A stretch of DNA of 64,000 nt from Macrostomum lignano. Its lineage: Eukaryota. Positions 18,701-21,700 of the stretch are shown piece after piece (position 1 is the first letter of the stretch; the number at the start of each line of letters is the position of its first letter). Position numbers and translations under genes: made by a program. Where the stretch lies: the NCBI GenBank assembly GCA_002269645.1, contig NIVC01001549.1:1-64000 (forward strand), given 5' to 3'. Below the pieces are notes generated by a model. It was not told where the DNA came from, did no database searches, and was given only the letters and a program-made list of their open reading frames with translations.

Positions 18701-21700
18701 CTCCCTCTCTATCTCCCTCTTTATCTCCATCTCCATCTCCCTCTTCATCTCCCCGTTCAGAATCTGTCTCCCCTCTCTTGCATATTCCTGTCATTCTGTC
18801 CGTCTCTCCAATTCCCCTCACATCTCCCACCCTGCGCTGTCGTTAATCCCCGCATATGTTTCTCCCCTAAATATCCCCTCTCCACAGTCCCATCCGCTAC
18901 ACTGCGCCAGCACCAGATTGCACTAATCCCAAACTCAAGGTGAAAGAGACTTCGTCTTCCCAACAGACGATCGAGCTCAGCTTAGCCGTACTGTGTGAGC
19001 CAAGCAGTTCCAGGGCACTAAGGCGGGATTTGCAACCTGACCTGATGCTGAACCCCCCCCAGCATCTTTTTAGTATCTGCATCTCCGCCGACAGGCAGGG
19101 CCATCCTCGCCTCTCGCTATCCTCCTCTTTTCTTCGCCCTCTATCGGCCATCACCGCGGCAGTATCGAGCCGAAGCAAAATGGCCTTCGCATTTATTAGT
19201 TATTACACGGGAGCGGCTCCACCGCACTAACCTATAAAGCACTAGTTCCCTGCATGTAATCAAGCTTTCCCCTTTCTGCGGTCTGTACATCCCCCCCCCC
19301 CTGCAAGCAACTTTTTATTTCTCTTACCCCACTGCGCCGCGAAGAGAATGGGCATCATCTGCTTGTCCCGGGTTTTCTCCCCTTCCCCTCCCCTCTCCAG
19401 TTGCCCCTCCAACTGCTCTCTTCATCGACTGCTCGCTTCAAGTTCCTCAAGTCATGTTCAATGGGAATTAGTCAGTCAGTCAGTCAGTCAGTCAGTCAGT
19501 CAGTCAGTCAGTCAGTCAGTCAGTCAGTCAGTCAGTCAGTCAGTCAGTCAATCAGTCAGTCAGTCAGTCAGTCAGTCTGTCAGTCTGTCAGTCTGTCAGT
19601 CTGTCTGTCTGTCTGTCTGTCTGTCTGTCTGTCTGTCTATTCGCAATAACTGCTGTTCTTATACTTATCAATTAGCATGCACTCACAGCCGGTCAACCAG
19701 CTACCATAAAGGCTTACTCGCTGCAGTGCGGCAGTCAGAAAAAGTGCCCCATAAGTCGCAGGGAAAAAGGAAGGCAGTTAATTTCCGCCAATCCGTCCAT
19801 CGGAAATGCAGCTTTCGATGGGCAGAGCTGATTCGCATGCTAAAAACGCAAATAGACTTCAGTTCGTTGATTAATATAAGATTTATAGGATTGCAACTCG
19901 AATATCAAATGGAAACTGACTAATGGTTGAAATCCATAAGTAGCATGAGCGATGATGAGGTCTGAGGATCACAGATGTTTAATAGAAATTGTCCTATATT
20001 AGAAATATCTTTATATTCTCGACTTCTGATAAGCATGCGAACCTGACAGGGGTAGGGAGTGACGGGGATAGGTGTATCTATCTATCTATCTATCTATCTA
20101 TCTATCTATCTATCTATCTATCTATCTATCTATCTATCTATCTATCTATCTATCTATCTATCTATCTATCTATCTATCTATCTATCTATCTATCTATCTA
20201 TCTATCTATCTATCTATCTATCTATCTATCTATCTATCTATCTATCTATCTATCTATCTATCTATCTATATATCTATCTATCTATCTATCTATCTATCTA
20301 TCTATCTATCTATCTATCTATCTATCTATCCATTACAATTTCATCAGAGCGGACATTTCGCATACAGCACAGCTGTTCTCATTCCATATCTGATGGCTAC
20401 AGACGGAACAAGACCCGATCGCAGGAGCAGACAGAGGGCGAGAGGGAGAGAAATAAGTTTTCATCGAGGCCCCACCGCCTCCAACTTAGTTTTCGCGGGC
20501 AGAGAGGGTTCGATGGGATATATTTCCTTATATTTTCCTTTTCCCTTCCCTCCTACTTTCCATCTATTCGCACTTTCTTCCCCACCCCGCCTCTGGGCCA
20601 ATGAGCAGCTGCTCTCAGAGGGATCAGGATGGGAGATTGGAGACAGAGCGAGAGGGAGACAGCATAATAAGAGGCTGATGATGGAGAAACAAGGCGATAT
20701 GGGAACTGGGATTGCAGCCATCGCTAGGCAGGCATGCAGCACCAGCGCGAGTTGCCCGCCACCCCAGCGAGGCGCCGGCAGCTGCCGCAGACTCCTACGT
20801 CATCGTCGACAGACAGTCAGAAGCCGCTGACGATTGTGAGCAGGTCGGACTCGTTCCAGCGCCTGCGCGTCCTGTTCTCAGAGGACGCGCCCCGGAGACC
20901 GCGCCAGGAGGCGGCGCCGGCCTCAGCGGCCAGGCAGAGGCGGTTCGGCCTGACCTACTTGAGATTCGCCGCCGCCACCGCCGCTGACACCGCGGAGGCC
21001 ACCCTGCCGGAGCGGTTCAGCAATGCGCTGGACTTCCTGCCCGAGTGTCCGCGCCAGCGAGTTTGCTCGCTGTTCGGCGCACCCCGCCGGCTGTTCGTGT
21101 CCTCCACTGCCGGGGTCAATAGGACTGGCAGCCTGAAGGACTGGCAGCAGCGGAGGCAGCAGCAGCAGGAACGACAGCAGGCGGCCCCAGCAAATCCAGC
21201 ATCACTGAGATCGCAGCCTCATCAGGCGCTCAGCCGCATCGCTGGTTGCGGCAGTTTCCGCTTGAAGCTGGGCGCGAACTGTCGCAAGCTAGTCGGTTCC
21301 TGCCCCTCATGCCAGGCCATGCTGTTCTACCTTTCCAGCGTGCCGGCCTTCAAGGACCTGCCAGTGGAGACCCTGAGCAAGCTTGCTGACGCGCTGGAGG
21401 CCGACCACTATCCCAGCGGGGAGTACATCATCCGGCAGGGGGCCAAGGGCAACACGTTCTACATCATCGCCAAGGGGGCGGTGGAGGTGACGCGGCGGGA
21501 CTCCACCGCAGGGGAGGAGGTGTTCATCCGGAATATGAACCGCGGCGACTGGTTCGGCGAGAAGGCGCTTAAAGAGTGAGATTATCGCTAATCTGTTTAA
21601 TCGCTGTCGAATAGGCAGAGGCAAAGAAATTGAAGAAGAAAATTGCTTGAATATTTTTCGACAGGATTTGCGTTGAAGATTGCTTGAAAGCAGGTGTTCC

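Follow-up and report, generated by a model that had tools for sequence, protein, structure and literature searches.

A candidate alternative first coding exon within intron 4 of a PKG-I-type gene of the flatworm Macrostomum lignano

The first 64,000 nucleotides of Macrostomum lignano contig NIVC01001549.1 (assembly GCA_002269645.1; this whole stretch of DNA is the window analyzed here) contain a complete gene for a type I cGMP-dependent protein kinase (PKG) on the + strand, with 13 coding exon positions and introns that all follow the GT-AG rule. Inside intron 4, directly upstream of the exon that encodes the N-terminal half of the second cyclic nucleotide-binding domain (CNB-B), lies a GC-rich open frame that begins with its own ATG and runs without interruption into that exon. 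The frame is described here as a candidate alternative first coding exon, which would add a third N-terminus (predicted isoform C) to the two encoded by the conventional first exons of the gene (isoforms A and B).

Exons were mapped by tblastn with database fragments and a human PKG I query, and each boundary was then read in the sequence; the human PKG I-alpha query was used for mapping only, the assignments being independently confirmed by the database fragments and by alignment to PDB entries. The coding features of the gene and of the candidate segment are as follows.

9450–9784, + strand: exon 1a, alternative first coding exon, with a leucine zipper and the I-alpha-like pseudosubstrate RGMGISAEP
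14593–14945, + strand: exon 1b, alternative first coding exon, with a leucine zipper and the I-beta-like pseudosubstrate KRTAISGES
15661–15827, 17333–17449 and 18039–18144, + strand: exons 2–4, which encode the first cyclic nucleotide-binding domain (CNB-A), placed by tblastn and splice mapping; missing from predicted isoform C
20725–20727, + strand: in-frame TAG, two codons before ATG 20734, closing the frame upstream
20734–21338, + strand: candidate isoform-specific coding segment (the extension), 201 codons started by ATG plus the first two bases of codon 202
21339–21575, + strand: exon 5, N-terminal half of CNB-B, common to all isoforms (Pfam cNMP_binding, 1.1e-12)
23381–23452, 23544–23612, 24132–24219 and 26549–26688, + strand: exons 6–9, placed by tblastn and splice mapping
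26910–26999, 27913–28341, 28999–29128 and 30674–30769, + strand: exons 10–13, with the stop codon at 30767–30769

Exons 1a and 1b are mutually exclusive; both end in phase 2 and both join exon 2 at 15661, giving conceptual products of 691 amino acids (isoform A) and 697 amino acids (isoform B). Their pseudosubstrates parallel those of mammals (RGMGISAEP and I-alpha RAQGISAEP; KRTAISGES and I-beta KRQAISAEP), and to find first exons in an alpha/beta-type arrangement in a flatworm may be of interest from an evolutionary standpoint. Exon 5 lies between an acceptor AG at 21337–21338 and a donor GT at 21576–21577 and is 62% identical to the human PKG I CNB-B region; exons 6–13 encode the remainder of CNB-B, the switch helix, the kinase domain and the AGC tail. 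Two M. lignano UniRef fragments (P0062, annotated as a PKcGMP_CC-domain protein, and P0059) match exons 1a and 2–4 in long identical runs, P0062 being the match to exon 1a, as befits DNA of M. lignano or a near-identical relative; the runs are interrupted by frameshift-like stretches in which the fragments read the DNA of the window exons in another frame. The deposited M. lignano gene models thus seem to derive from an indel-rich assembly, so gaps in annotation are uninformative. A further protein, P0001, is 76% identical in exon 5 and represents a paralogue. Two repeats lie beside exons of the gene: about 430 nt of (CTGT)n, a perfect microsatellite, directly follow the exon-3 donor (~17452–17880), and at ~29130–29605 on the + strand a frame stays open past the exon-12 donor through a tandem repeat with a weak GC bias at third codon positions (GC3; 0.66 vs. 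0.56/0.56), which probably represents a minisatellite within the intron and not coding sequence.

The frame that starts at ATG 20734 is open for 201 codons, to 21336, and its codon 202 (AGC) straddles the exon-5 acceptor at 21338/21339. Beyond the acceptor the same frame is that of exon 5 and continues to the donor at 21575/21576; left unspliced there, it meets a TGA at 21577–21579. An initial annotation of this DNA had described a GC-rich frame of 201 codons from this ATG, entering the CNB-B exon in frame and yielding a product of about 651 residues, and the reading of the sequence agrees in each respect: when spliced to exons 6–13 the frame gives exactly 651 amino acids and a single stop. 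The peptide encoded by 20734–21338 is basic, with an isoelectric point of 11.4, and R, A, S, Q, L and P make up 65% of it; Met195 (ATG 21316) is its sole further methionine.

Absence of stop codons over this length is, on its own, only suggestive of coding, as shuffles of the 603 bases (67% GC) are also stop-free, in 1.1% of cases when made by mononucleotide and in 3.5% when made by dinucleotide. GC content by codon position in the extension is 0.63/0.58/0.81 (chi-square p = 1.9e-6), with GC3 in the real exons of the PKG gene ranging from 0.64 to 0.90. Runs of CAG or GCC were rejected as the source of this periodicity, which is 0.56/0.62/0.77 after removal of all CAG and GCC codons. Codon log-odds were calculated with a codon-usage table trained on the neighboring ABC-transporter gene, which makes the test independent of PKG: the extension scores +0.03 bits/codon, the other two + strand frames score −0.75 and −0.53, and bona fide PKG exons range from −0.05 to +0.37. 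Shuffles that happen to be stop-free average −0.53 bits/codon, and the extension lies above them at z = 6.1. The signal is present in all three thirds of the extension and in its first 49 codons, and it does not reach past the exon-5 donor; ahead of ATG 20734, a stretch of 60 codons contains three stops and shows neither GC3 bias nor codon signal.

Among the PKG exons, exon 5 alone has on its upstream side an open extension that is both long and GC-rich (0.67). Two other frames served as controls: an open frame of 117 codons upstream of exon 10 has a GC3 of 0.48 and scores −0.85 bits/codon, and an open reading frame (ORF) that enters the same conserved acceptor in another species (locus L001) has no GC3 periodicity. 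The L001 frame and its product P0005 were rejected as a conserved alternative exon, since the frame starts with GTG, shows no similarity and lacks GC3 periodicity. L001 itself (2100–2711 of a Logan DRR639838 contig) carries, ahead of its CNB-B exon, an intron whose position and phase are the same, hence the position of this intron is conserved across distant animals; the L001 exon begins ...ttacag/C GTG CCT... and is further split after KGKV. Other origins of the M. lignano frame were also ruled out: a repeat or transposon, as the extension occurs once in the window and has no tandem structure; an antisense or other-frame gene, as the five remaining frames are closed by 2–8 stops each; and a non-coding RNA, as a scan of the whole window gave no Rfam family at or above its gathering score. 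We conclude that the segment encodes protein in this frame now or did so until very recently, and it probably is coding in some transcript.

How a transcript could begin with this segment depends on its 5′ end. In M. lignano a spliced leader (SL) of 35 nt, with ATG at its end, is added at about 30% of genes, and SL acceptors in this species are enriched for [T/C]TNCAG (PMC8629364). Two candidate elements precede ATG 20734.

20598–20671, + strand: putative core-promoter stretch, GGCCAATGAG with CCAAT at 20598–20602, and a TATA-like ATAATAAG at 20664–20671
20712–20717, + strand: TTGCAG, candidate SL trans-splice acceptor, which fits the M. lignano motif [T/C]TNCAG and lies 16 nt before the ATG

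The CCAAT and TATA-like elements lie 63–136 nt before ATG 20734 and are putative readings of the sequence; TTGCAG at 20712 is weak evidence because its motif recurs about every 508 nt along the window's + strand. Upstream ATGs are found at 20601, 20629, 20678, 20681 and 20699, three of them in an overlapping frame, so that an efficient message should start downstream of ~20699. Both a start about 30 nt past the TATA-like element and trans-splicing at 20718 would fit this constraint. We infer a transcript that would start inside intron 4 at ~20.70–20.73 kb, its 5′ end being set either by an internal promoter or by SL trans-splicing at the TTGCAG acceptor that ends at 20717. The exon-5 acceptor would be read through unspliced, the usual donors and acceptors of exons 5–13 would then be used, and translation from ATG 20734 would yield a kinase of 651 amino acids with a basic N-terminus of 201 residues, CNB-B, the switch helix, the catalytic domain and the AGC tail; the new N-terminus may be a place for isoform-specific targeting and phosphorylation. 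A perfect microsatellite, (TATC)64 at 20075–20330, lies in the same PKG intron ~400 nt upstream of the candidate ATG.

Splice phases bear on whether the segment is a first exon or an internal one. Exon 4 ends in phase 2 (AG/GT at 18144/18145), and the phase-compatible AGs for it inside the extension are limited to 20772 and 20964, both poor GAG-type sites; the real acceptors of the PKG gene are all CAG, TAG or AAG, and acceptors upstream of ATG 20734 lead into stops. The earlier conclusion that the segment is not an in-frame extension of exon 4 therefore holds. The further proposal that it is an exon of its own, used first in the transcript, is partly supported, being favored by a coding signature that begins at the ATG, but it overlooked that good acceptors at 20768, 20813 and 20882 suit the frame of the phase-1 donors of exon 2 (15827) and exon 3 (17449). 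A perfect donor-like GTGAGC occurs at 20836–20841 inside the extension.

The segment could thus be a coding internal exon, entered from the exon 2 or exon 3 phase-1 donor or from an unrecognized upstream exon through the acceptor at 20768, 20813 or 20882; its product would retain the zipper and pseudosubstrate, have a truncated CNB-A and carry an insert of ~150–190 residues before CNB-B. With CCACCCCAG/C (20768), GTCGACAG/A (20813) or CTGTTCTCAG/A (20882) as acceptor, such an exon would begin at codon position 2, in agreement with the phase-1 donors 15827 and 17449, and a coding signature alone does not separate first from internal exons. We nevertheless regard this arrangement as rather improbable: the 49 codons ahead of 20882 already show the GC3 and codon signal, which begins at the ATG; the frame opens with an ATG two codons past a stop; no coding-like segment lies between 18145 and 20734; and the skipping of exon 4 would, to judge from the PKG I alignment, remove beta-8 and the B and C helices of CNB-A and leave a broken domain. 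It is unlikely, too, that the frame is an untranslated product of chance in a GC-rich intronic island abutting exon 5, such as a regulatory element or a former CpG-rich promoter. Stop-free runs of this kind arise in 1–3.5% of composition-matched shuffles, a second one of 117 codons exists upstream of exon 10, and the peptide has low complexity, low AlphaFold confidence and no homologue in the libraries searched; composition alone, however, gives neither the excess of GC at position 3 (p = 2e-6) nor the z = 6 codon match to a neighboring gene in exactly the open frame, the exon-10 frame and the L001 ORF lack these features, and the signal is bounded by the ATG on one side and by the exon-5 donor on the other.

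A recently retired exon, i.e., an ancestral first exon or nested gene that kept its codon signature but lost expression, would account for a signature at the weak end of real exons, for the upstream ATGs that clutter the putative leader and for the lack of an annotated protein among the M. lignano UniRef entries searched. Against it stand 201 fully intact codons with an ATG, where decay in sequence of 67% GC would be expected to add stops or indels, and a database that also lacks exon 5, so that the missing annotation says little; we consider retirement quite improbable. Very improbable is an intron-4 transcript whose protein starts later, at Met195 (ATG 21316) or at an SL AUG trans-spliced at 20860 or 21316, to give a nearly bare CNB-B-kinase. 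The SL does end in ATG (PMC8629364), TTCCAG/C (exon start 20860) and TGCCAG/G (21316) give codon position 1, and Met195 is the only other methionine of the extension; but the coding signature over codons 1–190 would be left unexplained, and the sites at 20860 and 21316 are ordinary consensus matches.

The account we favor, by a modest preponderance of the evidence, is that 20734–21338 is a genuine coding 5′ extension of exon 5 and an alternative first coding exon of the PKG-I-type gene. Several observations weigh against it: the peptide is of low complexity (R, A, S, Q, L and P, 65%), and its log-odds per codon lie near the low end of those of genuine exons; the promoter and trans-splice motifs are weak matches to consensus; the upstream ATGs would interfere with translation if the message began more than ~35 nt ahead of ATG 20734; the exon 2 and exon 3 donors could join 20768, 20813 and 20882 in frame; neither protein search found a homologue of the 201 residues; and AlphaFold2, run on the 281-residue ORF with no alignment, gave a low-confidence and uninformative model (mean pLDDT, the predicted local distance difference test score, 42).

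Homologues of the extension were sought in two protein libraries. A word-indexed search across 5.8 billion proteins gave matches to the CNB part of the query and none to the extension, and an exhaustive phmmer search of 1.84 billion cluster representatives found no homologue of the extension, its lone match (P0006) being artefactual: P0006 is a 76-residue tandem-repeat protein with a score summed over five repeats and a BLASTP identity of 21%. Because these libraries also lack exon 5 of this gene, the missing homologue is weak evidence. The exact 281-amino-acid ORF sequence had no match in the public assembly index, the extension showed no similarity to the N-termini of isoforms A and B, and nothing relevant was found in the literature on Macrostomum PKG.

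The predicted isoform C comes from a PKG I gene but departs from the canonical architecture with two CNB domains. Pfam finds one cNMP_binding stretch (225–311) and a Pkinase domain (3.7e-71) in isoform C and two cNMP_binding stretches in isoform A; at E ≤ 0.001, cNMP_binding and kinase families are the only ones reported for isoform C, which is a weak null since the zipper of isoform A also goes unreported. Zipper heptads occur only in exons 1a and 1b, and the pseudosubstrate pattern [RK]-x-x-[AG]-I-S-[AG]-E is found in exons 1a and 1b and not in the extension, where the nearest thing to it is RRFGL, a looser R-R-x-G-hydrophobic match. The expectation that the product would be without the zipper, the canonical pseudosubstrate and CNB-A is thereby confirmed, with one cNMP_binding domain instead of two and no ISAEP/ISGE motif. 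Residues 197–651 of isoform C align over their full length with human PKG I-beta (7LV3, E = 7e-212), as far as the terminal GWDxDF, and from residue 197 isoform C matches the crystallized CNB-B/switch-helix/catalytic construct 7T4T from chain residue 11; an AGC-type catalytic domain and C-terminal tail close to those of PKG I are present. In the 7LV3 alignment the residues expected of a cGMP-competent CNB-B all line up, namely Glu and Arg of the phosphate-binding cassette (FGEKAL...RTA), the beta-5 Arg in FIRNMN (FLRTLG in the human protein) and the capping Tyr in DRKY (NKAY in the human protein), so by its aligned residues the CNB-B of isoform C is predicted to be cGMP-competent.

Removal of the zipper from PKG yields monomers that can stay autoinhibited if the autoinhibitory (Ai) sequence is kept, whereas delta1-77, which has neither zipper nor Ai sequence, and PKG-gamma (delta1-167) are constitutively active (PMC10299703, PMC9417419). 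In autoinhibited PKG, CNB-B touches the activation loop and the alphaH-alphaI loop and the Ai sequence blocks the active site (PMC9417419); the PKG I-alpha CNB-B/switch-helix/catalytic fragment 7T4T is a folded monomer (PMC10390508). Because delta1-77, PKG-gamma and 7T4T behave in this way, isoform C should be monomeric, with a high basal activity over which cGMP would have little or no control, unless its new N-terminus is inhibitory. That N-terminus may be disordered, as suggested by its composition and by single-sequence pLDDT, which is not diagnostic. The basic serine motifs listed in the initial annotation as possible autoinhibitory or phosphorylation sites are all present, at residues 37 (RSDSF), 130 (RTGSL) and 173 (GSFRLK), but a better pseudosubstrate candidate is RRFGL (residues 69–73), which fits the R-R-x-[A/G]-hydrophobic pattern, as do RGMGI (exon 1a) and KRTAI (exon 1b). 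VSRSDSF (residues 35–41) and VNRTGSL (residues 128–134) contain V-x-R-x-x-S sites of the hydrophobic-x-R-x-x-S type; RRFGL and these sites are candidates for inhibition and phosphorylation, respectively. The full scheme in which a natural monomeric PKG with a single CNB domain, made from an internal start or by SL trans-splicing, uses RRFGL as a replacement pseudosubstrate and is switched by cGMP through a cGMP-selective CNB-B alone is speculative and seems improbable.

The closest precedent is provided by the Drosophila FOR P2 and P4 isoforms, which arise from downstream promoters and have mostly disordered N-termini without a Leu/Ile zipper or autoinhibitory sequence (PMC10299703); these N-termini carry predicted basophilic-kinase sites, CNB-A is incomplete, and CNB-B and the kinase domain are intact (PMC10299703). 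Like FOR P2/P4, isoform C would come from a PKG-I-type gene that also yields zipper isoforms, and would have a specific sequence that starts with ATG and is in frame with the shared exons. It differs in losing CNB-A wholly rather than in part, and in having as its first exon a 5′ extension of the CNB-B exon, in contrast to separate first exons spliced into CNB-A. The resemblance is one of architecture, not sequence: the searches found no homologue of the N-terminal sequence in libraries from which full-length insect PKGs appear to be largely missing (matches there are fragments of ≤ ~420 amino acids). FOR P2/P4 are backed by annotated transcripts, whereas isoform C is predicted from genomic sequence. 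The idea of such an isoform is less novel than had been implied.

Mammalian PKG I-alpha and PKG I-beta differ only in their first ~100 residues, and both keep the two CNB domains (PMC10299703). Exons 1a and 1b of the flatworm gene resemble that arrangement in being mutually exclusive, each with a zipper and a pseudosubstrate, and in joining a common exon 2; the candidate exon would instead swap out zipper, Ai sequence and CNB-A. From residue 197 on, the conserved part of isoform C is a nearly exact equivalent of the 7T4T construct. Unlike delta1-77, PKG-gamma and 7T4T, which are laboratory or proteolytic products, isoform C would be genetically encoded, and its 201 additional residues might restore inhibition or targeting.

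Two other genes were recognized in the window. Downstream of PKG, an ABC-transporter gene extends on the + strand over ~36366–43339 and beyond, with two ABC_membrane regions and an ABC_tran exon of ABCB/P-glycoprotein-like type. On the − strand, a potassium channel gene of the Slo/BK family lies at ~50894–54238, with an Ion_trans_2 pore containing TVGYGD, BK_channel_a and a Slo-like RCK domain. BK channels are classical PKG substrates; the adjacency of the PKG and BK genes is probably coincidental.

Should the candidate exon prove not to be expressed, it would serve only to recall that long open frames can occur in GC-rich introns, although the coding signature argues against this. If it is used as favored here, one flatworm PKG gene would have three N-termini, two with a zipper and pseudosubstrate and one without zipper and CNB-A, and PKG isoforms with downstream starts, like those of Drosophila foraging, would not be restricted to insects. 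Isoform C would then be a natural counterpart of the artificial CNB-B/catalytic fragment, in which cGMP control by CNB-B alone, combined with a different inhibitory segment, can be asked about. M. lignano is tractable by transgenesis and RNAi, and the 600 isoform-specific nucleotides offer a clean handle for knock-down and in situ hybridization.

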